Origin: Bugula neritina
Lineage: Eukaryota; Animalia; Bryozoa
Direction: 5' to 3'
NCBI GenBank assembly: GCA_964035545.1
Contig: OZ037767.1
Span: 16,610,581-16,674,580, forward strand
DNA: 64,000 nt
Position 1 is the stretch's first letter. Each line of letters opens with the position of its first letter. Below the pieces are notes generated by a model. That model was given only the letters and a program-made list of their open reading frames with translations. It had not been told where the DNA came from and searched no databases. This document shows, piece by piece, positions 11,301 to 58,377 of the stretch. Position numbers and translations under genes: made by a program.

Positions 11301-13424
11301 TGGCATGTGATTTTACATTTAAACTATTTCTAAAGCCGTAACTAATTGAAATTGCAATTTTTTCAAGTATAAAAATCAAGTCCTAGCTTAGTATACCTTT
11401 TTAATGCTAATATGGCATAGGATTTCTGTACATCTAAAAGAATATTTTTAACCACTCATGTTTTTGGGCAAGTAAGCATTGTTATAATTGATTCTTGCAG
11501 GTGACAGAGGAGTAAAAGGTTTAACTGGTGTTAAAGGAGCTCAGGGTGCTACTGGAAGTATGGGAGATAGAGGACTAGCAGGTGTAAAAGGTGCGCCTGG
11601 AAGTGTTGGAAGTCCAGGTTTGAGAGGAACACCTGGAATTAATGGCATACCTGGTGCTAAAGGTGCAAAAGGTGCTTCCGGTAGTGTTGGTAGACCCGGT
11701 GCTAAAGGTGCTACAGGTACTCCCGGTGTTAAAGGTTCAAAGGGAGTTCCTGGACTCAAAGGAGCGTCAGGTATAAACATTATGCATGTGGGTCGTCATG
11801 AGATTCTATATTCAAAGTAATATTTTAGTAACAGCCTAATGTAATATTGAAACACTCTTTCCTAATATGTATTGCAACGTTAGAAATTTTCACACACGCT
11901 GTTTATTGTAGGAGAGAATCGCACAGTTGAAGATATATTGGAAGGGATTTTTGGTCGTAAGTATTTATCTATAAGTCTAGTTTCCTAATAGTTTATATTC
12001 ATGTTCTTTAAAAGTTGGTAGTCTTGTTCCCTAATAGTTGACAGTATTGTTCTCTAATGGTTGATAGTCTTGTTCTTTACTAGCTGGCAAAAGAATGGCC
12101 TGCAGTGCTTTAGTTCCCTAATGGTTTATCTAATGTTTTAAAACTACAATCACTTTAATAAACAATCAGTAGTTTGGAAACTATATGATGCAAATTTGAA
12201 AAAGTTGAAGTAACTAAACTTTACTCAATTGGCAATAGTAAAATTGAAGTATATAATTATTGTGTTTGTTCAATCTTATACCAATTACTCATATCTCACA
12301 GGATTCACCAATTTATTCAATAGGGGAAGTCTTTCAGATCGGCACGACTTATTATAGTTACCATAGATATCCTGGGAAAACTTGGCAAGATGCCAAAACC
12401 TTCTGCATTCAAAAAGCAGGTGGAAAACTCGCACAGTTACCTACTTCAAGTACAGAACGTCAAAGTTTGTCTCACAAGCTGAGATCTGTTTCAAGTGTGT
12501 ACAAATCATATAGAACTATATATACTTTCACTGAGTCTAACAATCTACAGTTGTGTCTTACTACTTTGATTATCTGATAAACAGAAGTAAAACATCTGAT
12601 AAACACTAGAAGTTCAGTTTCTATCACCAATTATTTTGCTTTTCAGTACAGAATAGGTAGTACTGTTAATGTAGCGTTATTTCTGTAGCATTCAAATTTT
12701 CTAATACGATTATTTAAGTTATTATAATATACATATATTTTATGATAATGAAGGTGTAGAAGCAACACAAGCAAAGCATCTGTCGACAGTTTAAGTTGAG
12801 TGTTAACATTACTGGATATAGCTGATTTATCTATAATTCTTATTTAAAATAGAAAATATATTTGGCTTTGTGTTAGGTTAAAAGTTGCTTTATATTTAAG
12901 TAGGTACATTTCATAATTCTATAACATAGTGTTGCTATACTGGAAGTTCGTTGTCATTTGCAGGCGGTTATAACCACGTTTGGGTTGGAGCAAATAGATT
13001 TTCTGGCACTTTTAAATGGAATGATGGTAGTTCTATCTCTGACTCTCTCTGGTTTTATGGACAACCAAATAATTTTGGTAAGGTTTTCTCTGTACATTAC
13101 TTTGTTTATAACAAACATAGATTAGACAGTCTGAGAACGTAAAGAAAGTTATCTTGCCTTGTTACTGCACCAGATAAACCTGTCATAATTATATATAAGA
13201 AACCATCATAATATAGCATAGAGTACAATCTGCTACAAAAAAACAGTCAACTTTTTTTGCTGAATCACTGATGCTCTTAGTAACCTATTGCCCAATAATA
13301 AAAGATGTCCTTTGCTGTTCTAGGAGGCCAAGAGAACTGTGCTGAATTCTTGCTCAACTATGGAACACTCACTGATCGTGAATGTAATTTTCTGTGGCCT
13401 TTTCTCTGTCAAATATCTAGTTAG
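8324..13424 (+). CDS. Copy 2: type II TM collagenous C-type lectin (scavenger receptor class A / collectin-12-like architecture), ~674 aa, apparently intact
   Basis: GT-AG exons 8324-8326 (ATG), 9499-9885 (tail, TM ISLVFCIINLLLWVSLLLYGVF, coiled coil), 10080-10371, 10482-11123, 11501-11770, 11912-11956, 12324-12494, 12964-13077, 13324-13424. Total 2025 nt, in frame. CTLD motifs TWQDAKTFC, WVGA, WNDGS, QPN, C..LTD..C..FLCQ. Confidence 0.85.
9921..9978 (+). mobile_element. tRNA-like fragment (probable SINE head) in intron 2 of copy 2; homolog at ~48512-48565
   Basis: TGTAATGGTTAGC D-arm-like segment, CCTGC-TTACAA-GCGGG stem-loop, GGTTTTGAATCCC T-arm-like segment; no complete acceptor stem. Confidence 0.45.
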
Positions 13425-29300: not shown

Positions 29301-32044
29301 AAAGGAGAAAGTGGACTTCCTGGTGTTGATGGCAGAATTGGTAGTAAAGGAGAACCTGGTAATAATGGTGAAGTTGGGGTGTCTGTAACAAAGGGTGAAA
29401 AGGGAATATCTGGAAATCATGGAGAAAAAGGAGCTCCTGGTAGAAACGGAGCCGATGGAGAAAAAGGAGTTCAGGGTTTGAAAGGTGATAAAGGTTTGCC
29501 TGGAAAGAATGGACTGCCTGGTGTAGATGGCATAGCTGGTGAAAAAGGAGAACCTGGTAGTTTTGGCTCAGCCGGCACACCAGGACCAAAAGGCGATAAA
29601 GGAATGTCTGGAGAAAATGGAAGAAATGGAGCACCTGGTAACACTGGTGCTAAAGGAGATCCAGGTGAACCTGGAGCTCAGGGAGACAAGGGAATGATTG
29701 GTCAAAAGGGATCAAAAGGACTACAAGGACAGACTGGAGTAAGAGGAGTGGCTGGTTTGAAGGGAGATTCTGGTAGAACTGGTATTCCAGGAGTCAAAGG
29801 TGAAAAAGGTGAATATTGTATTACACAGTATATATATTATATTGTTTAATATGTCGTATTACATATAGTAGAATATATTACTATCATCAGCTTGGCATGT
29901 GAGTTTACATTCAAACTGTTCCTTAAATTCCAACTAATTGAAATCGCTAATCTTCAAGTGTAAAAATCAAGTCCTTGCTTAGTATACGTTTGATTAGAGA
30001 ATTAGGGGTTTTTTTAGTACTTATATGGTATAGAATTTTTGCACTTCTCACAGAATATTCTTAACCACTCATGTTTTTAGGAAAGTATAAATCATTGTTA
30101 GAATGCTTTTCTTGCAGGTGGCAGGGGAATAATAGGTTTGACTGGTGCTAAGGGAGTTCAGGGTGTCAGTGGAAGAAAAGGAGATAGAGGACCACCAGGT
30201 GCTACAGGAGCTTCTGGAAGTGTTGGCAGACCAGGTTTGAAAGGAACAGCTGGAATTAATGGCATAACTGGTGCAAAAGGTGCAAAAGGTGCTTCTGGTA
30301 GACCCGGTGCCAAAGGTGCCACAGGTACTTCCGGTGTTAAAGGTGCAAGGGGAGTTCCTGGACTCAAAGGAGCACCAGGTATAAACATTATGCATGTGGG
30401 TCACCATGAGGTTCCATATTCAAAGTCATATTTTAGTAACAGCCTAATTTGATATTGAAACACTCTTTCCCTCACATGTATTGCAATGTTAGAAATTTTC
30501 ATGCACACTGTTTATTGTAGGAGAGGATTGTCCAGTTGAAGATATTTTAGAAGTGATTTTTGGTGGTAAGTGTTTATCTATAAATTTTGTTCATTAATAA
30601 TTGGTAGTCTTGTTCGGTGAACACACTATGCTGGTTGAAATCAATAGTTTATAAACTGATGGAAACTTAAATTTGATTGGCTAGTAACCTGTAATGACAT
30701 GGAACTTGTAAATGTGAAATGAAGGTATGGTATAGCTGTGTGGAATGATTAGTTATATTGAAGTTGCAATTTTGAAATTGCTGAGTTTAAAAGCCTTTGT
30801 CATGATCATTTTTAAAATTTTGAGCTGTAAGTGTGACTTTATTGGCACTTATAAACAATTGAATATCTTATTACTGTATTGGTTCAGTTTTATACCAATT
30901 ACACTCACAAGATTCACCAGGTTAATCGTTTTTCAGGAAAAGTTTTTAAAGTTGGCAGCACTTATTATAATTACCATAAAACTCCTAAGAAAAATTGGCA
31001 AGATGCCAAAAACTTCTGCACACAGAGAGCAGGTGGAAAACTCGCACAGTTACCAACTTCAAGTACAGAACGCCAAAGTTTGCGGAACAAGCTGGAATCT
31101 GTTGCAGGTGTGTACAAATCATAGAACCACATATACTTTACTAAGTCTAGCAACCTACAGTTGAGTCTCACTACTTTGATTATCTAATAAACACTATAGA
31201 AGCTCAGTTTCTATAATTCAGTATATTACTTTTCAGTACAGAGTGGATGGTACTGTTGATGTAGCATTATATCTCTAACACTCAGATTTTTTATGCAATG
31301 AAATACATACGCATACATACATACATAATATTTTATGATAATGAAGGTAGAAAAGCAATATATACGTAGATCAAAACACAAGTAAAGCAAAGAAAATAAA
31401 TTGAGTATAGCTGAGTTATCTATAGCTAACCTATTTTAAAAGATAAAATGGTTTGGCTTTGCTCTAGGTTAGACATTGCTTCAGTTTAATACCTTTCATA
31501 ATTCTACAGCATTGCGTTTCTATATATATTACTACATATACTGAAAGTTTGTTGTCAATTACAGGCTATAATTATAATCTTTGGGATTATGATCGTGTTT
31601 GGGTTGGAGCAAGTAGAGTTTATGGCACTTTTAAATGGAATGATGGTAGTTCTATCTCTGACTCTCTCTGGTTTTCTGGACAGCCAAATAATTATGGTAA
31701 GGTTTTCTCTGTACATTACTTTGTTTATAACAAATATAGATTAGACAGTCTGAGAACGTAAAGAAAGTTATCTTGCCTTGTTACTGCACCAGATAAACCT
31801 GTCATAATTATATATAAGAAACCATCATAATATAGCATAGAGTACAATCTGCTACAAAAAATCAGTCAACTTTTTCTTGCTGAATCACTGAAGCTCTTAG
31901 TAAACTATTGCCCAATAATAAAAGATGTCCTTTGCTGTTCTAGGAGGCCAACAGAACTGTGCTGAATTGGCGCTCAACCATGGAAAACTCAATGATCGTA
32001 GATGTGATGTTCTTCGGCCATTTCTCTGTCAAATATCTAGTTAG
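26326..32044 (+). CDS. Copy 4: type II TM collagenous C-type lectin, ~725 aa, apparently intact
   Basis: Exons 26326-26328, 28058-28444, 28529-28675, 28772-29069, 29176-29808, 30118-30378, 30521-30565, 30937-31107, 31565-31696, 31944-32044. Total 2178 nt, in frame, all GT-AG. CTLD motifs QPN / LND. Confidence 0.87.
26885..27328. mobile_element. MITE (~445 bp) with ~40-bp imperfect TIRs and TA target duplication in intron 1 of copy 4
   Basis: GTAGGGCCGCACGATGCGTTTTACATGTTCGTGACGTGC ... GCACGTCACGAACGTGTAAAAACGGTCGTGTGGCCCTAC. Empty site ATTAACAA at ~18421 (copy 3). Confidence 0.88.
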
Positions 32045-34198
32045 GAAGTGAGTCTACACATCAACCAATCAGCATCCAGTGACAAGCTTAGAGTAGAGTG
32101 AATTTGTTGTACTCTAGAAATATTTGTTATAGACTACATCATACTGTAATATGATATTATCATACTATATCTTACAGTAATATGATAGGATTATATACTA
32201 TGTTATACTGCACTATGATTCCTATACATATATACCTGACAAATATACAATCTACATTGAATAAAATAGACTGTGCTAGTTTATAATATTTCATCTTAAT
32301 GAGGTGCTTTAGCTGCTGTTTTATAAGTATTATTATACATAGTTACAATTATTGAATACAATAACATGTATATCTAGTAAATAACATTTAAAAAATACTT
32401 AACTTGCAGCATTATATAATTATCTGTAAATTGCCAAATCAATGAAAAGTTTATTGAAATAGAAATTAAAGTGTTCTATTTTATCAACTATATAACACTC
32501 TGAAATATATATAAAAAAAACATATAATAATTCTACAAGTTTTTAATAGCATAACAAATTGTATATTTTCATCAATGAGAAAGTGGTACTATATAAGTTC
32601 TATATTGAATATTAATGTCTGGTTTTTGAGTTACTGTTATATAATCACATCTCAACTTATCTGACAGCTGCATATGGTGGGAATGTGAAAGAGAGCACCT
32701 GCTTCCCCTGTCATTCTGATATATTCCCATTTACTACAATGACTCATCATTATATCAGCCAATCATATAAGTTTATTACATAGATTGTTATTAAACTCCC
32801 AAAGTACTCTGTCAATTCGAAATTCCCAAATATATAATACAGTTTAATTATTGTAACACTGAGATTTATATGGGTTGTAATAACTTAATTGAATAACTCA
32901 TCCGCTTTTGAGTTATTAAAATCTATTACAACTTATAGATTAAATTCTATTTACAATATTGCCAGGATTAAAACTAAAACACAATTTTTGTTCAAACACT
33001 TGTTTCCGGACCTTGAATACTCAAAATAAATAGCTTTGAATACGAACGGAATCTGGAATCCTCCATTACTAACAAAACAAAAGCCTCCAATAAAAAGACC
33101 AAAGGCAAGGATAACATTGGAGTTGACTAATCACGATGGAAGTAGAATTTGACTAGTACAGGAAATTAAGACTGTAATTTCCTCTCAAATGGGGAGTTGT
33201 CCCAAATTCTACTTTATAAACTGTATATATATCTCTCTTTTGTTATTTAGCTTAGGCTCATAATTAGTATGGCACACAATTCTATGCAGGTATTATTGCG
33301 CAATAGTTGTCTACATTCTAGTCACTTTTTATTGGCTAATGAATAGTGCCTATTCTGCACGAGTCATGCACAGTGTCGAATGTGGTAGTATTTTCTAGAC
33401 TTTACAATTTAGTATAAAAGCAGATGCTTTACTTGTAAAAGTAAGTTCATTTTCATAAGTTCATCTGTGCATATCTTGCTGGAGAAATAAAGCCTACTTA
33501 TATTTATAACTCTATTTACTCTCAACTGGATTGGCAAGCTGTATGCTACTTGTCTATGCACTTTTGACTACCAGACTTTTCGAACTCATCACACTGCTAC
33601 CAACAGTTTTGTGACAATAACTAATGTTTACAGAAACTAAATCTAAATATATAAAGTTCCCAGCAAACTTAGCCATGTTATCTACACATCTGTGTAGATC
33701 TGTAATTCCAATACTCAAAGGTTATCAATATATTATTTTCTCTGATGAGTTCCTTTTCAAAATTATAGAATGTCACATTAACTGGGAGTGTATTTCAAAT
33801 TATAGAACGAGTGAACTTTGGTTTGAGTAAACCTTTAAAACAATTTTACACGACTTTTACAAAAATAAAAGAGTGGATTAAGTTTTAGAGACTAATAATT
33901 GGGGGTTGCATTATATAATTATTATAATCTATCATATCAATTATAAAACATATTATTCTAAAACTCGCAAAAGTTTTACTATTATTTTCCTTCAACAAAG
34001 TGCATTGTTTGCATTATGATACATCGACATACTTTTTAGAACAAAATAAAATTATTATCTCCCCCCCCCCCCCCCCCCGTTCTATCCATGTGTTTATATT
34101 ATATGATGTTGTATTGCTTCAGTTCAACATATAAAACAGAAGACTCACTTACATCTATAACAGTTTCTCTCACTTTCATCAGAGTGTACAACTTGAGT

Positions 34199-44410: not shown

Positions 44411-45030
44411 GATTAGATTCACGGAATGTGAAAATAACTTTTTATGCCAATTGATTAGAAAATCTAAATGCACATGATATTAATTTTATTAAAATGCAGA
44501 GCCTACATACATGCACAGAGAAAACAATGAAAGGAGGACAACTGCTAATAGTACGTGCACCAATTTCAGCTACATTGAGAGTTATCTTCACATGAGAGAT
44601 GGCCATTTTGAAACACATTTTGTGGTATTACACTGTAATGTAATAACAGAAATATATATTATATTCCTGGTTTTTAACTAAAATAACTTAATTATAAAAA
44701 AATGCTGCTGTGAAAAAATAAATGATGAATTTTATTAATTCATATTTGGGTATTATACATTTGACAAAAATAGTGAAATTTACAAGCAGCTGAGAGTAAC
44801 AGATGAGTATATAGAATGTAACACAAGTAAATGTGGAGAATACTGATGAGCTGTGTATTGTGTTATCCTATCTATTAAATAGTTTCTATATCATCTAATG
44901 ACACTCTACTCCCAACTCATTCCTCGTTATTCCTGACTCGGTGAATCAACAGGAAACAGCGAGTGAAGTACCTGCCCCCTATTGACAGTCTATTCAGCTG
45001 TTCACACAACTCTTCCATTCTGAAAGAATA

Positions 45031-45546
45031 AATATACAGTATATAATAAATATATAATAATTATATAGTATATCATAAATATATAGTATATCATAACTAT
45101 TCTATATAATAATATATAGTATATAATAATATATAGTATATAATAACTATTCTATATAATAATATATAGTATATAATAATATATAGTATATAATAACTAT
45201 TCTATATAATAATATATAGTATATAATAACTATTCTGTATAATAATATATAGTATATAATAATATACAGTGTATAATAACTATTCTATATAATAATATAT
45301 AGTATATAATAATATATAGTATATAATAACTATTCTATATAATAATATATAGTATATAATAACTATTCTGTATAATAATATATAGTATATAATAATATAC
45401 AGTGTATAATAACTATTCTATATAATAATATATAGTATATAATAATATATAGTATATAATAACTATTCTATATAATAATATATAGTATATAATAACTATT
45501 CTGTATAATAATATATAGTATATAATAATATACAGTGTATAATAAA
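45031..45546. repeat. Expanded AT-rich minisatellite
   Basis: Same units as 6781-6950, about three times longer. Confidence 0.88.
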
Positions 45547-45549
45547 CAT

Positions 45550-45760
45550 GGGGTCTAGGGGTTAGAGCGTTTGCCTAGTAAACCCGAAGTCATGTGTTTG
45601 AACTTGACAAAGGCCATTGGTAATGTTAGGAAGAGCGTCCAGTCAATATTGCTCCTGTGTCACATATGAATAAGTACTTAGCCCTATTTAACAAAAGACC
45701 CTTTCTATCAGGGGTTTCTCACAGAAATGATGACTATAATAAACTTGTGTGAGTTTACAT
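45550..45760 (+). mobile_element. Putative tRNA-derived SINE (duplicate of 6953-7150)
   Basis: GGGGTCTAGGGGTTAGAGCGTTTGCCTAGTAAACCCGAAGTCATGTGTTTGAAC tRNA-like head. Confidence 0.45.
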
Positions 45761-46925
45761 ATATAACAAATACATAATGTATAATAAATAGTCTACTGTG
45801 CTTTATATACATTTTCAAGGATTTCGTATGTTTCATTATTTCTGACTGTTTCTGTGTAATAAGAATACTATTACAAATACAACATCTTATAAAAGAATCA
45901 TTTTATGACAATTTTCATAGCTTTTGAAAGTATTTTACATCACATATTTTACAAGCATGCACACATGTATGAATTGCTAAAATAATAATAAAGATCATAC
46001 TGCTGCACAATAAATTGACGCAGAAATGATTTTTCATGGAGCAGGAAATATCATTTAGTTTCCAGACATCTTAATTGGTACTCGTTCAGTTTAGCACAGT
46101 CCTCACTGCTTCCTGGAAGATAATAGTGAAACTACTACTAAATTAAATAATTTCAAATATTTATTTGAAAAGTTGTCTTCCCTTCCCATAGCTAAGTGTC
46201 AGATCTACAAACGTTTTCTGGAGAATCACTTCACAGTTCAGGGATGAAAGTGTGATATGTAACACAACAAGCTAGACAACACAACATTTGACATGTAGCA
46301 CAACAGTATATACATGTCATGTAGTACAACATTTAATATTGTGTAACACAACATAATACACAACATAACATGCCACATGTATTATTACAGTAACAGCATG
46401 CTCATGTACTACTAAAGTCCTATCACACGAGTTGTTTGGTTTTCTATATGATGCCAGAGAGATCCAGGAGTGGAGCTGCCGTCTATTCATTTCTGAACAC
46501 CAGGAACTTTTGCTATGCCGATCCCTAATGTGTGGAACACCTATAAGATGAATATACTTTGTTAAATGAGTTTTCATTAAAGAATTGGAGACAAAAACAT
46601 AATTAGTTTGTCAAAACACTGCTGTTGTAATTATTATAGCTAGTCAGTATCCTTCTGCTGATAATATTAAATACATTCCATGATGTTTTTTGCTGTGTCT
46701 ATGTTTATGTTCATGAAGCTGAGCTGCCATTAACTGGGATTGTATTCTAATTATAGAAGGATGGACTTTGATTTGTTTAAAACTCTGCAATAATTTTAGA
46801 TGACTTTCACTAAAATAAACAAGAGTATTGAGTTGGCTACTTCTGATCTAGTGGATATAAACAGCTGACTGGAGACATTTGACAAATACTTTCACTTTGA
46901 TAAAGGTTGGGTGAAAAACTGAAGC

Positions 46926-49900
46926 ATGGTAAGTTCCCAGTATACTTTATTTTTATGCATGTATGTTGTATGCGTGTATGTAAATGTATTTGTACATGTG
47001 TGGGTGCATTATATGTGCGTGTATATATGCGTGCATGCACATGTATGCATGTGTGTATGTGTATATGTAGGCACATATGTATAACATACATCTATATGTA
47101 TGTTATACATATGTATACAGATGCTTGTAAAGCTTGCTAGGAGCTATGTAATTATATAGTTTTTGGAAAGTTCAGTGTTTTAGCATGCAAAGTGCATTGA
47201 TACATTTTGAAGCTTCTTGTATCAGTTGATGGAAATTAAACGTTCAAAGGTTTTATTAATTTAAAAACTAGTGCATAATGAAAGCGTCTGTAAAATAAAC
47301 TCAAATTAAAGCAATAATTAACTATGCTTTGCAAAATAAAATAGATAAATTATGATTCTGTATAATTGTTTATAGTAACAGAATTAACTAAAAACCAAGT
47401 AGTAGCTTGCTTTTAGGTACTATTGTGAATAGCATGAATATAGTTGAGCATACATTTTTGAAATTTAAAATAAAATAGAAATACAAAGATGAATTATTAT
47501 ATTAAATAGTAAAGCACTTCTGAAGGTGTTGTTAATAATTTTTTTTTTATTAATTGGAATGGATAATTTATTTGCTAACACTCAAGTTTTGAATTGAGTT
47601 AGTGTATAAGTAACTCCAAATTTTAAAATTTACTTCGACTGCATTCATTTTTCTCAACTGTACATTATATCAATATAATTCTATTCAGCGAACCGAGATA
47701 CACTTAAATATAAAAGATATTCTAAAGCTTAAAGCATATTTTTCGGTAATTAATAATTCCGCTGCTTATTTTATTGTCAGAAGAAATTCACTGGCATTTA
47801 TAATTATTGCTAATAATAGACAGCCATAGAGTTCAGTGTAGAAATATAAAATGATAATAGCATTAGAACAGGGGATAGGAGATAGGACAGCAGCTTCTCG
47901 GTGCTATATGTACTTACCGTAATTTATTCCTTAGAAGTTCATAGCATTAAAACAAGAATGAATGCAGCATCTATTGAATTATAACCCGTCTAGTTTCGGT
48001 TCAGTGCACGCATCTTATAACATTGGAAAATACTTTGTGTTTATGGTAATTCAATTTGTTTCTTCAAAATTCATACAAACTTGGTTGAAGGAAACAGAAA
48101 AGAAGAGTTCAAGGACATCAGAGACACGCAGAGGTGTTCACAGAATATCTTTGGTGTTCTTTATTATAAATCTTCTCCTGTGGGTTTCCTTACTGCTCTA
48201 CGGTGTATTTGAAGTGTCAAACTTGTACAGAGAAGTTGATAGTCTTACAGCTGCTACTAGAGAGAAACCATCTGCTGCGACCTTGACACAAACTAAACAG
48301 GAAGTAGAAGAAAAATTCATAGTGAGGCTCACAGAAGAGATAAGAAACATACAAAGAGAGAGTGAACGAGAAAAAAAGAATTTAACAAAAAAAGTTGAAG
48401 TGCTGGAAGAAAAGTTGCGTTTAGTTGACAACCAACATGATAACTTTAAGAGATTCTGGAAGGAAGTGGTAGAAAAGGTGAAGTTAGAGTGTTGGATTTA
48501 CTTACTGACCCATGTGGTGTAATGGTTAGCGAGCTTACAAGCGGGAGGTCTTGGTTTTGAATCCCATTTTATAAAGTTTATAAAGTGTATTGTGCATGAT
48601 ACGCAGATAACCATATTTTACTCAATTGAAATTGTCACCACAGAGTAATCTATTTCGTTGCTTACAGGTGCTGTTTTATGAGAATAGAGAGAGCAAAGAG
48701 TGGATAACTCCAGTCAGTACTTCTGCCTCAACTACATCTGAACCAACTAGCACCGCAGAGATGGGTAATGGTGAAACAGAGCTGCATTCAACCAATGAGA
48801 GTGTTCCATACACACAAAGTTCAGCCAATAGAAACACCTCCAAGACAGAAGAAGGGAACCCTACAGTTCCACTTCATACTTCATTCAAGGATATGGGAAA
48901 TTCCTTGGGCTATGATGACACAGACCTGCCTTCACCTGAGCAAATTGCTAAACTTCTAGGTAAAGTATATAATAATCATTAAATAATCATTTACTCTAAA
49001 ATCAAATAAATATATTCGTGTTGCTTTATTCAAGATTTTCATCATTTATTATTTTATTCTGTTTTTCAGCTTGTAGACAAGGACCAAAAGGCGAAAAAGG
49101 AGTTAATGGAAAAGATGGACATCCTGGAATTGACGGTGCAACTGGAGAGGGAGGAGCACCCGGCATTATGGGAGAGAAAGGAGTGTCAGGAGATAAAGGA
49201 GAAAATGGACTCTCTGGTGTTGATGGCAGAATCGGTAGAAAAGGAGAACCTGGTAATAATGGAGAAGTTGGAGTGCCTGGAGCAAGAGGTGAAAAGGGAA
49301 TGTCTGGAAATCATGGAGAAAAGGGAGCTCCTGGTAGAAACGGAACCAACGGAGAAAAAGGAGTTCAAGGTTTGAAAGGTGATAAAGGTTTTCCTGGAAG
49401 GAATGGACTGCCTGGTGTAGATGGCATAGCCGGTGATAAAGGAGAACCTGGTATTTCCGGCTCAGCCGGCACACCAGGCTCAAAGGGTGATAAAGGAATG
49501 CCTGGAGAAAATGGAAGAAATGGAGCACCTGGTAACACTGGTGCTAAAGGAGAACCAGGTCATACCGGAGCTTCGGGAGACAAGGGAATGATTGGTCAGA
49601 AGGGATCAAAAGGAATACAAGGACAAACTGGAGTAAAAGGAGTGACTGGTTTGAAGGGAGATCCTGGTAGAGCTGGTAGTCCAGGAGTTAAAGGTGCAAA
49701 ATGTAATGAGTAATGTACATACAATACCCATCAATCTAACTTTTACTCTCATCAAGTTATTTTTACATAGCACACTATTACACAAATATTATACTAAGTA
49801 GCGTGTTGTATTATACATAGTATATATTATATTGTTTAATGTATTGTATTGCAGATAGTAAAATATATTACTATCAGTTTGGCATGTGATTTTACATTTA

Positions 49901-52054
49901 AACTATTTCTAAAACCGTAACTAATTGAAATTGTAATTTTTTCAAGTATAAAAATCAAGTCCTAGCTTAGTATACATTTTTAATGCTAATCTGGCATAGG
50001 ATTTCTATACATCTAAAAGAATATTTTTAACCGCTGATGTTTTTGGGCAAGTAAGCATTGTTATAATTGGTTCTTGCAGGTGACAGAGGAGTAAAAGGTT
50101 TAACTGGTGTTAAAGGAGCTCAGGGTGCTACTGGAAGTAAGGGAGATAGAGGAATAGCAGGTGTAAAAGGTGCGCCTGGAAGTGTTGGAAGTCCAGGTTT
50201 GAGAGGAACACCTGGAATTAATGGCATACCTGGTGCTAAAGGTGCAAAAGGTGCTTCTGGTAGTGTTGGTAGACCCGGTGCTAAAGGTGCTACAGGTACT
50301 CCCGGTGTTAAAGGTGCAAAGGGAGTTCCTGGACTCAAAGGAGCGTCAGGTATAAACATTATGCATGTGGGTCGCCATGAGATTCTATATTCAAAGTAAT
50401 ATTTTAGTAACAGCCTAATGTAATATTGAAACACTCTTTCCTAATATGTATTGCAACGTTAGAAATTTTCACACACGCTGTTTATTGTAGGAGAGAATCG
50501 CACAGTTGAAGATATATTGGAAGGGATTTTTGGTGGTAAGTATTTATCTATAAGTCTAGTTTCTTAATAGTTTATATTCATGTTCTTTAATAGTTGATAG
50601 TCTTGTTCACTAATAGTTGATAGTCTGGTTCTTTAAAAATTGGTAGTCTTGTTCCCTAATAGTTGACAGTATTGTTCCCTAATGGTTGATAGTATTGTTC
50701 TTTACTAGCTGGCAAAAGAATGGCCTGCAGTGCTTTAGTTCCCTAATGGTTTATCTAATGTTTTAAAACTACAATTACTCTAATAAACAATCAGTAGTTT
50801 GGAAACTATATGATGCAAATTTGAAAAAGTTGAAGTAACTAAACTTTACTCAATTGGCAATAGTAAAATTGAAGTATATAATTATTGTGTTTGTTCAATC
50901 TTATACCAATTGCTCATATCTCACAGGATTCACCAATTTATGTGTTTTTAAGGGGAAGTTTTTCAGATCGGCACGACTTATTATAGTTATCATGAATCTC
51001 CTGAGAGAACTTGGCAAGATGCCAAAACCTTCTGCATTCAAAAAGGAGGTGGAAAACTCGCACAGTTACCAACTTCAAGTACAGAACGTCAAAGTTTGTC
51101 TAACAAGCTGAGATGTGTTGCAGGTGTGTACAAATCATAGCACTACATACACTTTCACTGAGTCTAACATCCTTGAGTTGAGTCCAACTACTTTGATTAT
51201 CTGATAAACAGAAGTAAAGCATCTGATAAACACTAGAAGTTCAGTTTCTATCACCAATTATTTCGCTTTTCAGTACAGAATAGGTGGTACTGTTGATGTA
51301 GCGTTATTTCTGTAGCATTCAAATTTTCTAATACGATTATTTAAGTTATTATATAATATACATATATTTTATAATAATGAAGGTGTAAAAGCAACACAAG
51401 CAAAGCATCAGTTGACAGTTTAAGTTGAGTGTTAACATTACTGGATATAGCTGATTTATCTATAATTCTTATTTAAAATAGAAAGTATATTTGCATGGCT
51501 TTGTGTTAGGTTAGAAGTTGCGTTATTTGAGTAGGTACATTTCATAATTCTATAACATAGTGTTGCTATACTGAAAGTTTGTTGTCATTTGCAGGCGGTT
51601 ATAACCACGTTTGGGTTGGAGCAAGTAGAGTTTATGGCACTTTTAGATGGGATGATGGTAGTTCTATTCCTGACTCTCTCTGGTTTTATGGACAACCAAA
51701 TAATTTTGGTAAGGTTTTCTCTGTACATTACTTTGTTTATAACAGACATAGATTAGACAGTCTGAGACTAAAGAAAGTTATCTTGCCTTGTTACTGCACC
51801 AGATAAACCTGTCATAATTATATATAAGAAACCATCATAATATAGCATAGAGTACAATCTGCTACAAAAAATCAGTCAACTTTTTCTTGCTGAATCACCG
51901 ATGCTCTTAGTAAACTATTGCCCAATAATAACTGATGTCCTTTGTTGTTCTAGGAGGCCAACAGAACTGTGCTGAATTGATGCTCGACTCTGGAAAACTC
52001 AATGATCGTAGATGTGATTCTCTGTGGCCATTTCTCTGTCAAATATCTAGTTAG
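46926..52054 (+). CDS. Copy 7: type II TM collagenous C-type lectin, ~671 aa, apparently intact; closest to copy 2
   Basis: Exons 46926-46928, 48091-48477, 48668-48959, 49070-49702, 50080-50349, 50491-50535, 50953-51123, 51595-51708, 51954-52054. Total 2016 nt, in frame. CTLD motifs QPN / LND. One collagen Gly>Cys at the exon junction 49702. Confidence 0.85.
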
Positions 52055-52211
52055 GAAATGAGTCTACACATTAACCAATCAGCATCCAGTGACAAGCTTA
52101 GAGTAGAGTGAATTTGTTGTACTCTAGAAATATTTGTTATAGACTACATCATACTGTAATATGATATTATCATACTATATCTTACCGTAATATGATAGCA
52201 GTATGTACTAT

Positions 52212-52663
52212 TGTATCGGTTTGTGTTTGTGTCTGGTTGCAAGATATGCTTTAACTGCTAACCAACTTGGCAACGGGTTTTCGAGTTTATTAACTGTCAA
52301 ATCGTACCCTATAAAATGGGAAACATTAGAAATTGTATAAATAAGTAGTCACAATATAAATAAAAATTCAGAGGAACACTACGAATATTACAGAACCAAA
52401 AAAATTGACATGAACTATTATAATTCTAATAAACTTACAATATTGATGCGTGGATAAAAATCTTAGCCATTACAATACCGAAACCGATAGTTTATTCATA
52501 CAAAGAGTGTAAATATGGCGGTTTGATCATGATACACTGACTCATGCAGTACAGTGAATGAACTAGCTCTGCCAGCTAATAGTAGCTTTGGTAAAAGCTT
52601 TTGAAGCTTGAAAGCTTTAATGATTGGCTGCCTGCCAATACTTCTGGGTGGCATACCAATACA
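52212..52663 (-). repeat. 3' LTR
   Basis: Matches 57926-58377; I found one mismatch (52471 T vs 58185 C). Confidence 0.95.
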
Positions 52664-52883
52664 TCGGTGGGGTCGAATTGTTTGGCAGATACTATTCTGA
52701 CAAATATTGATAAATTATGTAAATCAAAACAAACAAACCAAAATAGGACCAGTCACAGACCATGAAATTCTTGCACCAATCCGCTGACCCCTCCGCGCAC
52801 CAGCCCGTCCCCCGAAAAACGGTTGAATGCAAACCTCTCCAGCGACACGAGCGTACACGCGGCCAAGAAGGTAGATCAGTCAT

Positions 52884-55800
52884 TTATGGGTTCACTTCGG
52901 TTAATAAAGCCAACCTATGCACGCTGCGGGTTATGATAGTGTCTTTACAGCCTACATAGTGCCTCAGTTTCCCCGCTACCTTATAGTTTTTGTAGGAAAG
53001 GGCTACTTTCCTTACTATGCCATCCTTGCTCGGATATACTTGATGTACTCGAGCTAGTTTATACTGATTACGCAGCTGATTTGGATCCATAACAACTACA
53101 ACATCTCCCACCTGAAAGTTTCGTCTTGGGGTATGCCACTTTTGGTGATGAATCAGTGTGGGTGCATACAATTCAGTCCACTTCTGCCAGAAGTCATCTG
53201 AGACTGCATTTACCAGAGCCAGTCGCCCCCTTAAGGAGTAGTCTGTATTCCAGTTGCCAGGATTCTTGATGAAGGGTCGTCCAATAAGTTGGCAGTTAGG
53301 TGTTAATATGTTGATCTCGGAGTCTGAATCTGGCAGTAATCCCAATGACCTTTCATTTAGTGTGTTTGCAGCTTCAGTGCAGATTGTGAGAAATTCTGTA
53401 GGTGAAAGCCGGCGGTTGCTCATTGAAAATGTGAAACATCTCTTGACAGCCTTTATGAGTGATTCAGCAGCGCCCTGATACCAGGGGCTGTCACCGGGTC
53501 CAAATTCCCATTGCAATCCATTTTCTGCGCTGGTTTTCTTGATAGAACCTTTGTCCATGCGTCTCTACATATCTTTGAGTTCTTTTTCTGCTCCAGCTAA
53601 CTGTGTTCCAGGATCAGAATAAATCTTGGATGGCCAGCCACGAATGTTGACAAATCGAGTTAATGCCAACAGGAAAGAATCACTGTCATATCCAAAAACT
53701 GCTTCGATGTGTGCTGCTCGTGAACTGATGTCTGTGAATATTACTCCATAAGCTTTGCTCGAAGTTCTAGTCTGTTTTTCTCCTCTCACAATATACGGAC
53801 CAAAAAGATCCATCATTACATTGTTGAACGGCGGTCCGGTTGTTAGTCGTTCTGTAGGTAGACTTCCCATCAGTTGATCAGTAAAGCGAGGTTGTTTGAG
53901 TCGACACATTTGGCATGATGTTACTATGCCCCTAGCAACCTTGGATCCCTGCATAGTCCAAAACTCTTCTCGGAATCTTGCGAGTGTTGCATCTCGGCCA
54001 CGGTGATAGCTGTCTGTGTGTGCCTGCCGCATTGCCAAGTAGGTAAAGTAGTGAGTGGTGGGAAGGATTGATTGCGTGTGCGTTTTAATCGCTGTCATGG
54101 GGTTATGCCTTAGGAGTCTACTGCCTACTATCCATACTCCACTCTCTGTCTTAATGGGGTGAAGTCTTGTATATTTCCCTTTAATCTTGTTCAACTCAGA
54201 ATCTATAGTGTGTTGCACCTGCTTCAGTAAGTAGAGTTTGGTCTGCTGTAGATCTGCCACGGTGACGAGATCAGGTTGGATTCCCTTAAAACTTTTGTAC
54301 TTGAAGATGTTGCGAACTTGAGCTATTGCCCATGTTAGACTCTTGAGGCTGCTGAAATTTTCATATTTAATAAATGATTGTACTTCTGTTGATGTAGTGA
54401 CGGTGTAAACTATTTTCTTCTCTCCAAAGACAACCTCATTCGAGTCAGATGGCGATTTTATATCCCATTGATTCTCTGGCAGATAGAGAAAATTTGGGCC
54501 TCTCCACCATTCACTCTCAGGTCCAATGTCATTGACAGGCTTCCCTCTTGTAAGCCAATCTGCTGTGTTTTCCTTGCCACTTACCCAGTGCCAGCAGCTC
54601 ATATCCCCATTGGTTGCTCCCTGAATTTCTCCGATGCGTACACCCTCGTAAACGTGAAACCTTGTTGACTTCTTTTGGAGCATCTTGAGCACCGTTTCAG
54701 ATTCTATAAGCTGATAAACTTTCTCAAACTCATAGCGCATTTCAGTCTTAATAACTTGTCTGCCTCTCTTTGACCATACGGCCGCATTGAGTTCTAGTTG
54801 AGGAATCTTGAGTTGTTGTTTTATGGGTGCTATACGACTTTTAGCTGTAGCTTTGTTTACCCCTTTAGCAGTCGCTTTAGATTCTGCCCCCTCATTGGCC
54901 GGAACAGGCGTGGATTGTGTGATAGAGGTACTGCTAGTAAACTCATACTTTCTTTTAATCTCTACAGACATGGACATAGAGTCATTGACTTCTAAAGATC
55001 TGTTCAACTGTCCAGAACCGATTTGTCCTGCAGACTCAGTGTCTGGGTCTCCCGGGCTCTGTAAAGGGTCGGAATCATCGGCTGACTCAATCATACCACA
55101 TTCAGTGGCTATAGTATGTGATTCACCACAATTTATAATAGTCTGAGGTCTTGAAAATGACTTTGCAAACTGACTGGGAGATGCGTCGGGACTATTGACA
55201 CTGTAAGTTGGCGTAGAAACTGTAGACAATTCAAAATCACAACTGTTGAGCGTGTCGTTGTGTATGCTTTGAGTGAATTCAACTTCCTCTAACTTCTCAT
55301 GCGCCATGTTAGCCTGTACATGAAAAGATGAGGATGGAAGTGTAGAAAAGTTGCTAAGGGCAGGGTGTGATCCCTGCACACACAGTCCAAAGGGTCCGGA
55401 ATATACATAGAGGTGAGGTCCTGCTTGATCAACTTGGTGTTTTGGATGCAATCCAAGAAGATCGTTACCAATTAGCAGGTCGATGGGTCCCGTCCTCTTC
55501 AATAGCTTGTGAGTATCTACTTTCGGGAAGAGAGATTTGAGGATGTTTGCATCAAGTGGCCTGTTGATAGCCCCTGTGAGTTTCCGAAGGCTGTAAGCTA
55601 AAATTGCAAAGGTCCTTCCCTTTGGAGTTTGTAACTTTACTTCGTAAATAGTAGAAGTTTCGCTAACTTCATGTTCACCAAGTGTGTTCATTTCCAAATT
55701 CACCTTATCTATTTGTCGCGCACCCCACGCTTTAGCAGCTCTCTCCGATATGAATGAAGCATTGGATCCGCCGTCAAAGAATACAATAGCTGTATGAGAT

Positions 55801-57902
55801 GTACCCACTACTTGAGCCTGCTGAATGGCAAATACTGTAGTATTTCCTGGATGATTGTGCGCTCCATGATTGGGAGACACACGGACCGTGGTGCTAACAG
55901 CAGACGCTTCAGAATTCTCATTACTCTTGTGCTTAATTTGACCAGCTTTTACTTTATTCTTGTTGGTATTACAATTGGTATGTGTATTAGTTTCAGCTGA
56001 TTTGATACACAATAATACATGGTGGGTTGTTTTATCACAGACTGGACAAGGGGTTCGGAAATTTGGACAGCACTTGGGCTCATGGGCACCCAAGCACCTA
56101 GCACATAGAGAATTAGTTTTTATTAACTTGTATCTTTCATCTACAGACAACGCCAAGAAATTTCTGCACTCAACAAGACAATGACGCTCACTGCGATGAA
56201 TAAAACAGTAATTCTCACTATCAATGGTTTTGCTATTATTAGTAGACCTGTTACTACTAGACTTTGGGCCACTGCTTTCAGTGTGGAACGCTTTCACCTT
56301 CTGTTTACGCATACTGGAGGACTGCGGGTTTAGAGTTTCTATGCGTCTGAGGGCTATCTGCCGTTCCTGCTCTAGAAACCTCATGAGGTGTGGGAATGGC
56401 TTGATTCTCTCCTCGTGAGTAAGTGAGTGAAAGTGTCTATCCCAGTCCCGTCTAATGCTTGTAGGTAATAGGTTTGCAAGAGTGTCGACTTGTGGCAGCG
56501 TAACAGTTTGCAAAAGTCCCACTTCACCGAGTTGGCTGTACGAACTTTCCACTGCATTGGCCATTTTGACGAGTTCTCGTGCATCTCCTTCTTTTACTGG
56601 CTTTAGTTCTTGTAGATTGCTGAAGACTGCTTGCACACTCATGCTAGGATCATTGTAGACCTCTTCTAATCTACACATCATTCTCTCGTAAGCTTGAGGC
56701 TGAGTTGCGAAGATTGGCTGAACCATCTCCAGAGCTTCGCCTGTGAGAAATTTTTTCAATTCACAAGCCCTATCGACATCATCGTAAAACATAGTAGCAT
56801 ACCTTAGCCACACTGACCTAAATTCCGGCCAATGGTATCTAGTGCCGTTAAATGGCCTGGGTTGTGAATGAGTTTTATGTATAGATGAATTAAAGTTATT
56901 TCCACCTGTATGTCTAGAGTCATAACTTATTTGAGTTGTCCCATTAGGGTAGCTATCATATGCATTGACAACAGAGGAAGTTGCGCCGCGAATTAAAGAT
57001 TCAGAATGAGCTGCACGATCAGGACTACCATGTAGATCACGTACTGAGAACGTAGAAGAACGAACATCTCTGACATTGGTACTTGCTATGACACCTGGAT
57101 TTGATGCCAAAGCTTCACCGGATGTGTGATCTTCCCATAGTACCTGCCTATCACTACCGCTTGCTGTGATACCTGGATTTGGTGCAAGAGTAGCCTCATG
57201 TGTGCTAGGCTGTGATCTAGGAGGAAACAACCGACTCGACGCGACCATAGTCGGTGCATGACTCGCGCCGTCTGAAGGTGACCCCCCACCGCTCTCCGCG
57301 AGACCGGACCGGACCACGGACGGATCAGATTCACGATGTTCGAAACTCATGCTCTGTGACTGAGCCCTTGACATAAGAGTAAACTTAAACATACAATAAT
57401 CTAGAGATAAAATAACTTCATCTAGTTCTAATAATAAATCAGAAAAACCTATGGTATCTGCCAAACTTTCTGAAAGAGCTACACATTTCCTATGATGTTC
57501 AGTGATAAGAGTATTGTCAGTACAATCAGTGACTAATCCATTGGCTTTCTTAATCGCTAAAATAAGGCTGTGCTTGATTTTATAGAATTTGCTATGCCAA
57601 GTATTACAGTCAGAAATAGCTTTGTCATAACTAGCCTTTACAGTTTGATAGTACTCTACTGGACTCATCTTATTAACATAAGCAATGTCTTCCATAGACT
57701 CATCTGATGAAACGTATTCCAAAAAGTCATAATGGATAGTTAGAAACTCTTGATATGTAGATTCAAGCTGAGATCGCAGGCATTCCACTTGTGTAGAGTT
57801 GCTACTAGAGATTGCTGATTCTATGAGATTAGTTAGCATTGTTACCTTAGACCTCAGAGTAGTACGTTGCTTCTTGAGATTAACTATGTCCTGTCGGTCC
57901 AT
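52884..57902 (-). pseudogene. BEL/Pao polyprotein (Gag with three Cys/His knuckles, aspartic protease, C-terminal RNase H remnant, integrase) with one in-frame stop
   Basis: Knuckles CFIH..H..C, CARC..H..C, CPVC..H..C; protease FFDGGSNASFI and LLIGND; RNase H remnant AKSRIAP..IPQLEL; integrase H-H-C-C and MDLFGP / YSDPG / AAES. TAG at 53565-53567 is in frame with ORF 52884-53558. No YxDD RT domain. Confidence 0.9.
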
Positions 57903-57925
57903 GTCAGCCTCAGCAATATTGGTAC

Positions 57926-58377
57926 TGTATCGGTTTGTGTTTGTGTCTGGTTGCAAGATATGCTTTAACTGCTAACCAACTTGGCAACGGGTTTTCGAGT
58001 TTATTAACTGTCAAATCGTACCCTATAAAATGGGAAACATTAGAAATTGTATAAATAAGTAGTCACAATATAAATAAAAATTCAGAGGAACACTACGAAT
58101 ATTACAGAACCAAAAAAATTGACATGAACTATTATAATTCTAATAAACTTACAATATTGATGCGTGGATAAAAATCTTAGCCATCACAATACCGAAACCG
58201 ATAGTTTATTCATACAAAGAGTGTAAATATGGCGGTTTGATCATGATACACTGACTCATGCAGTACAGTGAATGAACTAGCTCTGCCAGCTAATAGTAGC
58301 TTTGGTAAAAGCTTTTGAAGCTTGAAAGCTTTAATGATTGGCTGCCTGCCAATACTTCTGGGTGGCATACCAATACA
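57926..58377 (-). repeat. 5' LTR
   Basis: Direct repeat of 52212-52663. Confidence 0.95.

Follow-up and report, generated by a model that had tools for sequence, protein, structure and literature searches.

Within a 64-kb stretch of genomic DNA from Bugula neritina (the window, to which all positions refer), a tandem gene array holds at least 11 paralogs that bear a C-type lectin-like domain (CTLD), and two of these, copy 2 and copy 7 (c2 and c7), differ more in the exons encoding the CTLD than in the non-coding DNA around them. The best reading of this pattern, which we hold with roughly even confidence, is that surface positions of the CTLD diversify recurrently and that patchy exchange between paralogs accompanies this. 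On that reading the excess would be due to selection, and not just to conversion or clustered mutation. Rapid receptor diversification of this sort is familiar; that it is driven here by selection is only partly proven.

Organisation of the array and of its genes

The array genes encode putative type II membrane proteins in which a transmembrane segment is followed by a coiled-coil-like region, a Ser/Thr-rich spacer, a collagen stalk and a C-terminal CTLD, the coding sequence for the last being split over three phase-1 exons (E, F and G; Table 1). The transmembrane and coiled-coil character of exon A was read by eye from the sequence: in c7 this exon specifies a basic stretch, then a hydrophobic segment of ~20 residues, then a heptad-rich (coiled-coil-like) region. 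Exons A and B of c7, each searched singly, matched no Pfam family. Collagen repeats, recognised by Pfam Collagen in exons C and D, lie N-terminal to the CTLD, and the second collagen exon is probably joined to exon E in one gene. All introns are in phase 1 with AG/GT sites. The genes are presumably expressed. Copies 2 and 7 stem from a two-gene segmental duplication, c1+c2 against c6+c7, whose halves are about 96% identical.

Table 1. Coordinates in the window of the features of copy 7 and of their counterparts in copies 2 and 4
Feature	Position	Strand	Evidence or content
Copy 7 exon A	48091..48477	+	Open frame, conserved among copies; 5' boundary approximate, start codon not located
Copy 7 exon B, Ser/Thr-rich spacer	48668..48959	+	Open frame, conservation
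Copy 7 exon C, first collagen exon (Gly-X-Y)	49070..49693	+	Pfam Collagen E=1.5e-36
Copy 7 exon D, second collagen exon, 270 nt	50080..50349	+	Pfam Collagen E=4.4e-19
Copy 7 exon E (beta1, alpha1, alpha2), phase 1 at both ends	50953..51123	+	AG/GT, open frame conserved in CTLD-bearing copies
Copy 7 intron E	51124..51594	+	24/465 differences from copy 2
Copy 7 exon F	51595..51708	+	WVGA (= WIGL motif), W.DGSS, terminal QPNNF (EPN-type motif)
Copy 7 intron F	51709..51953	+	8/244 substitutions relative to copy 2
Copy 7 last exon G, TAG stop	51954..52054	+	12 differences from copy 2
Copy 7 3' tail	52055..52208	+	Homology with copies 2, 4 and 8 persists; copy 2 differs at 6/154 sites
Copy 2 exon E	12324..12494	+	Counterpart of copy 7 50953..51123
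Copy 2 exon F	12964..13077	+	Counterpart of copy 7 51595..51708
Copy 2 last exon G	13324..13424	+	Glu at Ca2+-site position; LTD in place of LND
Copy 4 exon F to 3' tail	31597..32201	+	About 95% identical to copies 2 and 7 alike

The identity of the domain is supported by its cysteines, which belong to alpha1, the start of beta3, the stretch following beta4 and beta5, occur as TFC, NC(A/V)E, R.C and FLCQ and are kept in all 11 copies; the FLCQ motif is present in every copy except c0 (ILCQ), and the four cysteines and FLCQ are the same in c2 and c7, as a preliminary description made from the sequence had stated. The WIGL position holds WVGA, WIGA or WFGG. Exon G carries the Ca2+-site Glu position, beta3, the beta3-beta4 turn, LND (= WND motif), the beta4-beta5 loop, FLCQISS and the stop codon. 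Domain and structure searches were run exon by exon. Against Pfam PF00059 Lectin_C, exon G, a piece of only 32 aa, reached E=0.0011 with 20.2 bits where the cut-off is 22.6, and exons E and F as single-exon queries gave no match. Among solved structures, CTLD matches were found for exon F (E=5.8e-4), exon G (E=0.06) and exon E (E=0.055, a weak best match to surfactant protein D, SP-D), and exon G aligns to tetranectin, SP-D and CL-P1, the first two being its best matches. With exon E as query, the protein library yielded no full-length relative; the top match was a 65-aa fragment (72%) carried by two JGI metagenome contigs, each about 1 kb long, and the others were multi-CTLD proteins with 22-54% identity over short stretches and far weaker E-values.

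Between c2 and c7 the stalk exons A-D have pN 0.017 and pS 0.037 (omega about 0.5) and are free of stop codons; both genes are therefore constrained and intact. An artefact, either of assembly or collapse in a repetitive array or of a wrong exon model, is most improbable. The differences analysed below are substitutions that keep the reading frame, the AG/GT phase-1 exon boundaries are preserved in 10 of the 11 copies, many of the states concerned are common to other copies, and no extra near-identical haplotig copies were found in the assembly.

An excess of replacement differences in the lectin exons

The preliminary description had counted 12 differences between c2 and c7 in the 101 nt of exon G, 11 of them non-synonymous (with 10 residues changed) and one synonymous. 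Recounting gave the same figures: the silent change is CCA>CCT, a single R>E change takes two bases, and the peptides quoted for both copies are exactly right. Its count for exon F (six non-synonymous, one synonymous; 7/114) was likewise reproduced, as were its approximate figures for intron F, where we find 8 substitutions and 3 gap columns in 244, and for collagen exon D, with 4 coding differences in 270 nt. Exon E, which it left out, is also elevated (13/171), and altogether 25 of the 127 CTLD residues are replaced.

When the three CTLD exons are pooled they differ at 32/386 sites, against 45/1106 in local non-coding DNA, a baseline that includes the 3' tail (p=0.0015). For non-synonymous changes per non-synonymous site the comparison is 27/301.5 against 45/1106, a ratio of 2.2 (p=0.001). 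Exon G taken alone stands at 12/101 against 14/398 in intron F plus the 3' tail (Fisher p=0.002), its divergence being 3.4-4 times that of its flanks (p=0.001-0.002), and on a star tree of the trio c2, c7 and c4 its length is 17.5/101, compared with 19/398 in the flanks (p=6e-5). Ranked by number of differences, the top four 101-nt windows of the 5.2-kb alignment of c2 and c7 are all ones that overlap the three CTLD exons. The densest, which holds exon G, has 15 differences, and the interval 51102-51202, which is mostly intron E, has 14; differences are thus clustered, and the Fisher tests' assumption of independence holds imperfectly. Within that interval, the dense cluster at 51141-51186 consists largely of states private to c7.

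The control pair c3/c9, of similar intron divergence, shows the opposite pattern, with 8/386 exonic against 34/738 non-coding differences, so that its exons diverge at 0.45 times the non-coding level. Copies c4 and c8 were unsuitable as a control pair, being near-identical across the region (0-0.5% in non-coding DNA). The claim that an exon here outpaces its adjacent intron is thus borne out as to the excess, which is real and is absent from the control pair; the interpretation put on it, diversifying selection and/or targeted conversion at the binding surface, is partly supported.

Polarisation places 16 of the CTLD changes on the c2 branch and 12 on the c7 branch, and in exon G, relative to c7, c4 and c8, eight changes are derived on the side of c2 as against three on that of c7. 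The c2 branch carries 15 non-synonymous changes to one synonymous, at a non-synonymous rate 3.1 times the c2-derived non-coding rate (p=0.0015); the corresponding ratio for c7 is 1.3. The splits of non-synonymous to synonymous changes, 11:1 in exon G, 27:5 in the whole CTLD and 15:1 on the c2 branch, are each compatible with neutrality (P=0.26, 0.32 and 0.12), the neutral expectation for exon G being a non-synonymous fraction of 0.795. A ratio of 11 replacement to one silent change in a 101-nt exon should not by itself, then, be taken as evidence for dN/dS>1. Synonymous differences in exon G among the trio number only 1-2 of about 21 synonymous sites, the level of the young introns and below that of older paralogs, and the replacements therefore look recent rather than preserved from an ancient divergence.

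Position of the replacements and the putative Ca2+/sugar site

All 25 replacements fall at positions that vary within the family, as judged in the other 8 paralogs, whereas this is true of 54/102 of the remaining positions (p=1.4e-6). At the 48 invariant positions there is no replacement, when about nine would be expected if they fell at random. The restriction to family-variable positions argues against random decay.

Alignment to SP-D places c2/c7 differences at the equivalents of E329, N341, F335 and A344, in the beta3-beta4 turn and in the loop after the third Cys; E329 and N341 we take to be Ca2+/sugar ligands of SP-D. Site 2 of canonical Ca2+-dependent sugar-binding CTLDs is marked by EPN or QPD, by a Glu preceding the beta3 Cys and by the Asn-Asp of WND on beta4, and these motifs vary over the array. 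Copies c3, c9, c0 and d1 have QPD, E and LND (complete save for Trp>Leu); d2 has EPN, E and LND; c7, c4 and c8 have QPN, Q and LND, and c10 QPD, Q and LND; c2 has QPN, E and LTD; and c5 has QPD, a deletion at the Glu position, and LYN. Judged by these motifs, c2 and c7 each lack one canonical ligand. The preliminary description placed the fast change at the binding surface, and the predicted alignment agrees for exon G, where Ca2+/sugar ligand positions would be hit; but several of the inferred fast sites in exon E would lie in the beta1-alpha1 loop and at the alpha2-beta2 junction, which are far from the sugar site in canonical CTLDs. The changed positions may nevertheless face the ligand.

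The LTD of c2 invites the suggestion that this copy is redundant and drifting, under relaxed constraint or after loss of function, and that the change from LND marks a decaying sugar site. The preponderance of polarised changes on its branch would fit, as would an omega statistically indistinguishable from 1 (see below) and the fact that the N>T at the N341 equivalent and the neighbouring K>T are private to c2 or nearly so. Such decay is improbable all the same, since c2 has kept its frame and every splice site, its stalk retains an omega of about 0.5, its replacements avoid the invariant positions, and its non-synonymous rate exceeds the non-coding rate instead of equalling it. Moreover, at the E329 equivalent it is c2 that has the canonical Glu, where c7, c4 and c8 have Gln.

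Since the duplication the stalks of c2 and c7 have been under purifying selection. Under the preferred reading, recurrent diversification together with exchange, the lectin head would diversify repeatedly at a constant set of positions that tolerate change and lie mostly on its surface, the primary Ca2+/sugar site and its flanks among them. Selection for altered ligand specificity would keep the changes, most strongly on the lineage of c2, and the variation would come in part from new point mutations, in part from short-segment swaps among paralogs (mosaic gene conversion).

Codon models

Codon alignments were made by joining exons from their coordinates, and the likelihood code was checked against iqtree2 GY+F3X4, whose lnL it matched exactly (-1962.87). 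The question whether dN/dS exceeds 1, which the preliminary description had posed as a check, receives a divided answer: there is support for a class of sites with omega>1 across 10 paralogs, but none from pairwise, branch-site or exon-wide tests. On a single tree, M2a was favoured over M1a with 2dlnL=20.98 (p=3e-5; omega2=4.5 for 7.6% of sites); with a tree for each exon the values were 2dlnL=17.58 and p=1.5e-4 (omega2=3.4 for 11.7% of sites), and with all 11 copies 2dlnL=16.43 and p=2.7e-4. Comparison of M8a with M8 gave 2dlnL of 17.4 and 14.7. In the by-exon fits of M2a and M8 the branch lengths were fixed to M0 estimates with one scale factor per exon, which makes the likelihood-ratio test (LRT) conservative. 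When only the six closest copies are used, the site-model LRT drops to 5.2 (p=0.07). Recombination inflates tests of this type, and the division into exon-wise trees leaves within-exon mosaicism in the site-model results.

The pairwise maximum-likelihood omega for c2 and c7 is above 1 but not significantly so, either for the CTLD (1.37; LRT 0.43) or for exon G (2.85; LRT 1.26). Branch-site tests with c2, c7, c3 and c5 as foregrounds were all null (2dlnL=0.03 for c2). An exon-wide omega above 1 across the family was rejected, the estimates being 0.55 for exon E, 0.87 for F, 0.50 for G and 0.81 for the variable core of G.

Mosaic history and exchange between paralogs

Conversion, the other process to which the excess had been attributed, is supported both by switches of genealogy between introns and exons and by an enrichment of shared states in the exons. 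The nearest relative of c2 and c7 is c5 in intron D, and c4/c8 from exon F onward. Copy 4 differs from both by about 24% in intron E, and from c2 by 24% there but by only 1.6% (4/244) in intron F; since it is distant in intron E and close from exon F on, a conversion or recombination breakpoint is placed at the start of exon F. A Sawyer-type permutation of longest identical runs gave p=0.0005 for each of the pairs c2-c4, c7-c4, c2-c5 and c7-c5. The exon trees are incongruent, and c4/c8 group with c2 in intron F but with c7 in exon G, only 17 nt further on.

Both states of a c2-c7 difference are present in other paralogs for 23/32 exonic but only 19/45 non-coding differences (p=0.012). Expressed per site, such shared differences amount to 23/386 in exons and 19/1106 in non-coding DNA, and account for the whole exon excess, whereas private differences accumulate at the same rate in exons (9/386) and in non-coding DNA (26/1106). 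Exchange or parallel change, and not novel mutation, is what these rates suggest. An exon in a tandem array can outpace its intron largely through exchange between paralogs.

It is accordingly worth asking whether neutral mosaicism would suffice, that is, patchy conversion or clustered, repair-associated mutation (or both) with the CTLD exons as the focus, together with a purifying filter only and no selection for diversity. This we regard as possible but rather unlikely. The switches of genealogy, the discordance of intron F and exon G and the equality of the private rates are all as it would predict; the cluster at 51141-51186 is an instance of clustered change without coding, and the N:S ratios, like the branch-site tests, are not distinct from neutral expectation. 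Other features fit it poorly. Conversion within the trio c2, c4 and c7 cannot yield 9-14% exon divergence when their introns differ by 1.6-3.3%, and synonymous sites in exon G are not raised as import of an old tract would predict. The shared states of exon G interleave c3-type and c10-type, and none of the 11 copies in the assembly offers a contiguous tract that would account for them. The site models still favour omega>1 on exon-specific trees, and c3/c9, in the same array, shows no excess.

A contiguous conversion tract of c3-type or c10-type into exon G of c2 was also considered, and was rejected because matching and non-matching sites alternate through the exon; c2 is without the c3-type state at 51972. 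A donor search of the assembly returned the 11 known copies and a lone exon-E-like fragment at C3:13.52 Mb, which is without the c7-specific states, and found no donor for the private states of c2 or c7, including those of the cluster at 51141-51186.

A more radical possibility, which we consider very improbable, is that a dedicated diversification process, germline or even somatic, is aimed at the CTLD exons and shuffles a shared pool of binding-site states. Such a process would be an exon-centred, short-patch and partly untemplated exchange, resembling immunoglobulin gene conversion in its logic, and would here be operating on collagen-stalked lectin receptors in what would be an invertebrate without adaptive immunity. 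It would explain the interleaved exonic excess of shared states, the clustered changes that extend 60 nt into intron E from its start, and the failure to find contiguous donors.

Comparison with known lectin families

A search of the literature on Bugula neritina C-type lectins found no paper on the present receptor family. The predicted order of parts in the array genes, from a short N-terminal tail through transmembrane segment, coiled-coil-like region and collagen stalk to the CTLD, is that of collectin placenta 1 (CL-P1, COLEC12, SCARA4) and of other vertebrate class A scavenger-receptor-like membrane collagens, and the weak structure matches of exon G include the lectin domain of CL-P1 (2ox9). 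The likeness is one of part order, similarity to solved CTLDs being weak (E 0.06-1.3 per exon), and the array genes differ from CL-P1 in their Ser/Thr-rich spacer, their arrangement in a tandem array of at least 11, their QPN, QPD and EPN variants, and the division of the CTLD over three phase-1 exons. With the collectins (SP-D, mannose-binding lectin) and tetranectin they share collagen plus CTLD and the register of a putative EPN/WND-type Ca2+ site 2. The soluble collectins are secreted, whereas the array proteins are predicted to be membrane-anchored; several copies have Gln for Glu at E329, and the Trp of WND is Leu in all array copies.

In the snaclecs, C-type lectin-like proteins of snake venom whose evolution is accelerated, as in venom phospholipases, paralog exons diverge faster than introns and mostly by amino-acid-changing differences. 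Snaclec chains are also among the structure matches, and the array likewise has exons ahead of introns with mostly replacement differences, but its excess is modest (2-4x), occurs solely in the CTLD exons of a single young clade and is mixed with mosaicism, and its pairwise dN/dS is not significant. Diversifying selection combined with gene conversion is also known for the rodent Ly49/KLRA NK receptors and for invertebrate CTLD expansions with EPN/QPD variants. Clusters of the Ly49/KLRA type resemble the array in their birth-and-death organisation, conversion between paralogs, variable loops that in the array would face the ligand, and variant Ca2+-site motifs; they differ from it in phylum and in the collagen-stalk architecture.

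The copies amount to natural variants on one scaffold (QPN/Q/ND, QPN/E/TD and QPD/E/ND), and as such are suited to studies of how the primary site of C-type lectins is retuned. If the preferred reading is true, specificity residues, metal and sugar ligands included, are replaced while neutral divergence is still no more than a few percent, and the array would constitute a repertoire for recognition by lectins in a phylum where immunity and the recognition of symbionts have hardly been studied.

Organisation of the lectin gene array

The window (G000:C3:16610581-16674580, in a eukaryotic assembly of 216 Mb) holds a tandem array of genes that extends beyond both its ends, each gene consisting of exons A, B, C and D followed by E, F and G, the last three encoding a C-type lectin-like domain (CTLD). 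The whole assembly contains 11 G exons, of which nine belong to this array and two to another cluster, at 12.57 Mb. Assembling the genes gave eight copies whose frames are intact and whose splice sites are canonical, and three more completed the set. One of these three, copy d2 of the second cluster, carries CT where exon F should be followed by a GT donor (L010:1352-1354), for which reason it was excluded from most tests; it is either a pseudogene or the user of another donor, and it alone among the copies bears an EPN motif. A protein library search found no full-length relative of these genes, and no description of this particular lectin family was found in the literature or that library.

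Features of the lectin genes and neighbouring elements, with differences between copies 2 and 7 (N, non-synonymous; S, synonymous)
Feature	Window position	Strand	Copy 2 vs copy 7	Remarks
Exon A				basic stretch and hydrophobic segment, then heptad-rich region
Exon B				spacer rich in Ser/Thr
Exon C				collagen (Pfam Collagen E=1.5e-36)
Exon D (270 nt)			4 coding differences	collagen (Pfam Collagen E=4.4e-19)
Exons E, F, G				one CTLD, divided by phase-1 introns
Exon E	copy 2, 12324-12494; copy 7, 50953-51123		13/171	absent from the preliminary description
Intron E			24/465
Exon F	copy 2, 12964-13077; copy 7, 51595-51708		7/114 (6 N, 1 S)
Intron F			8/244, plus 3 gap columns
Exon G	copy 2, 13324-13424; copy 7, 51954-52054		12/101 (11 N, 1 S)	10 residues changed
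3' tail	copy 7, 52055-52208		6/154	local non-coding baseline
4 kb upstream			about 2%
BEL/Pao-type LTR retrotransposon	52209-58377	minus
Its 455-bp direct terminal repeats	52209-52663 and 57923-58377			99.56% identical
Satellite, 2 kb	3715-5705			59 copies of 34-bp unit, 96% matches, higher-order period 304

Copies 2 and 7 belong to a two-gene segmental duplication in which copies 1 and 2 (1-13581) correspond to copies 6 and 7 (43282-52211) through blocks 92-97% identical. Copy 6 is without a 5.1-kb segment of copy 1 (1061-6150), which contains the satellite and carries copy 1's divergent lectin-like exons (about 1864-2010 and 3174-3266), so that copy 6 seems to be a derivative lacking the lectin part. 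A stretch faintly resembling exon F, interrupted by a stop, occurs between copies 6 and 7 (46448-46537, minus strand) and may be the relic of a lectin exon. The BEL/Pao element lies precisely where copy 7 ceases to match the DNA downstream of copies 2, 4 and 8, a match that resumes at 58378. The element encodes Pao peptidase, an integrase zinc-binding domain and DUF1759 in an open frame of 1463 codons, and DUF5641 in a second one of 224 aa. Its terminal repeats are far more similar than copies 2 and 7 are to each other, which makes the insertion younger than the duplication. Two contigs of about 1 kb (L015 and L016, from JGI metagenome samples 3300002729 and 3300003318) encode a 65-aa piece that is 72% identical to exon E and has a TELQSL motif like that of copy 0; a related animal, as host, is the probable source of this DNA.

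Excess divergence in the CTLD exons of copies 2 and 7

All the counts of the preliminary description, for exons F and G, intron F and collagen exon D, were reproduced on recounting. Its claim that the CTLD exons outpace their introns also holds, with 32 of 386 exonic positions differing against 45 of 1106 local non-coding ones (p=0.0015). N changes per N site in the CTLD reach 2.2-fold the local non-coding rate (p=0.001), and differences in exon G lie 3.4-4-fold above its flanks (p=0.001-0.002). All four densest 101-nt windows of the 5.2-kb alignment of the two copies overlap CTLD exons, the second-densest (51102-51202, 14 differences) being mostly intron. In the control pair, copies 3 and 9, intron divergence is comparable (3.4-6%) but exons diverge at 0.45 times the non-coding rate. 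The stalk exons of copies 2 and 7 show pN of 0.017 against pS of 0.037 and no stops, so that outside the lectin head both copies are intact and under constraint. Given the contrasts with the control pair and with the stalk, the excess exceeds noise.

Since about 79% of all sites are N sites, the N:S split is uninformative taken alone, whether 11:1 (P=0.26), 27:5 (P=0.32) or, on the copy 2 branch, 15:1 (P=0.12). Among copies 2, 7 and 4, every pair is 9-14% apart in exon G and only 1.6-3.3% apart in introns, and star trees are 3.6 times as long for exon G as for its flanks (p=6e-5). Synonymous differences within this exon are at the level of the young introns, so the replacements look recent. 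When changes were polarised by the nearest other copy (copy 5 up to intron E, copies 4 and 8 from exon F onward), 16 exonic changes (15 N, 1 S) fell on the copy 2 branch, with an N rate 3.1 times the copy 2-derived non-coding rate (p=0.0015), and 12 (9 N, 3 S; 1.3 times) on that of copy 7.

Position of the replacements

All 25 replacements between copies 2 and 7 lie at positions also variable in the other eight paralogs, and none at the 48 invariant positions (p=1.4e-6), a pattern unlike what random decay would produce. Decay of copy 2 is a poor fit to this total avoidance, as it is to the intact frame, and we regard it as improbable.

Exon G can be aligned to tetranectin, SP-D and CL-P1. In SP-D the Ca2+ ligands are E321, N323, E329, N341 and D342, with D325 and R343 flanking them and F335 stacking. 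At the residue that we take, from this alignment and these roles, to be equivalent to E329, copy 2 has E and copies 7, 4 and 8 have Q; at the presumed N341 equivalent copy 2 has T and copy 7 N, and the presumed F335 equivalent differs between them (M/L/A). The two copies also differ at what we take to be the beta3-beta4 turn, the A344 equivalent and the loop beyond the third Cys. The exon E changes presumably fall in regions distant from the sugar site of canonical CTLDs.

In copies 4 and 8, 18 nt (YNYNLW) are inserted in frame where exon F starts (about 31582-31599 in copy 4; L003:1117-1251 in copy 8), and copy 8 has one further inserted codon. In exon G of copy 5 (about 39341-39432; L011:1499-1590), a 3-codon deletion takes out the Ca2+-site Glu position with the frame intact, and LYN replaces LND; the canonical Ca2+ site of copy 5 has probably been lost.

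Mosaic history of the copies

Exchange between paralogs, which had also been proposed, is supported by switches of nearest relative along the sequence. Copies 4 and 8 are about 24% from copies 2 and 7 in intron E, yet 1.6-3.3% in intron F; in intron D the copy nearest to copies 2 and 7 is copy 5; permutation tests on the longest identical runs yield p=0.0005 for pairs of copies 2 and 7 with copies 4 and 5; and the trees of exons E, F and G are mutually discordant. Copies 2, 4 and 8 have derived states in common in the 3' terminal part of intron F (51932-51945), and 17 bases further on exon G instead unites copy 7 with copies 4 and 8. Four substitutions and an indel of 4 bp separate copies 2 and 7 in the exon E acceptor region (50942-50950 in copy 7, 12317-12321 in copy 2), where copy 2 agrees with copy 5 (..ttattcaatag) and copy 7 with copies 3 and 9 (..gtgtttttaag); this looks like a short templated patch at the exon edge. 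A lone exon-E-like fragment remote from both clusters (G000:C3:13521555-13521666, minus strand; L028) is 81% identical to copy 7, with a 3-nt insertion and without the copy 7-specific states.

Both states of a difference between copies 2 and 7 occur in other paralogs for 23 of 32 exonic and 19 of 45 non-coding differences (p=0.012), while private differences are equally frequent in exons (9/386) and non-coding DNA (26/1106). The exon excess thus consists of states that recur among paralogs, and these are so interleaved that none of the assembly's copies accounts for them by a single contiguous tract. Clustered change also happens outside coding sequence, as shown by ten substitutions within 46 nt of intron E (51141-51186), several or most of them private to copy 7; no donor for these private states was found in the assembly, and the stretch is either a mutation cluster or the vestige of a lost donor.

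Tests for diversifying selection

Codon likelihoods were computed with our own GY94/F3x4 code, whose lnL was identical to that of iqtree2 (-1962.87); separate trees for each exon served as a crude correction for recombination at introns.

Site-model comparisons for the CTLD exons
Copies and trees	Models	2dlnL	p	omega2 (sites)
10, one tree	M1a vs M2a	20.98	3e-5	4.5 (7.6%)
10, one tree	M8a vs M8	17.4	3e-5	3.9 (9.3%)
10, separate tree per exon	M1a vs M2a	17.58	1.5e-4	3.4 (11.7%)
10, separate tree per exon	M8a vs M8	14.7	1.3e-4	3.0 (14.5%)
11	M1a vs M2a	16.43	2.7e-4	3.1 (11.5%)
Six closest	M1a vs M2a	5.2	0.07	1.9 (41.5%)

The suggestion of diversifying selection thus stands in part: a class of sites with omega (dN/dS) above 1 is found among 10-11 copies but reaches only p=0.07 among the six closest, branch-site tests were null, and pairwise omega between copies 2 and 7 (CTLD 1.37, exon G 2.85) did not differ significantly from 1. 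Taken over whole exons, omega stays below 1 (0.55 for E, 0.87 for F and 0.50 for G). Of the sites whose naive posterior exceeds 0.8 in the separate-tree fit, exon G contributes four, the beta1-alpha1 loop two, and the alpha2-beta2 junction and the start of exon F one each. The non-significant pair-level and branch-site tests, and the ability of recombination to inflate site tests, leave some room for an account in which mosaicism or clustered mutation produced the exon excess free of selection, which we consider rather unlikely. The best-supported explanation, to which we would give about an even chance, is recurrent diversification of a fixed set of putative CTLD surface positions, including the primary site, through selection, mutation and exchange together. 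Selection would keep changes at these positions, and both new mutations and patchy exchange among paralogs would supply them. The case of copies 2 and 7 and their array belongs with the known fast-evolving tandem lectin receptors, and its CTLD exons outpace introns as do those of venom lectins.
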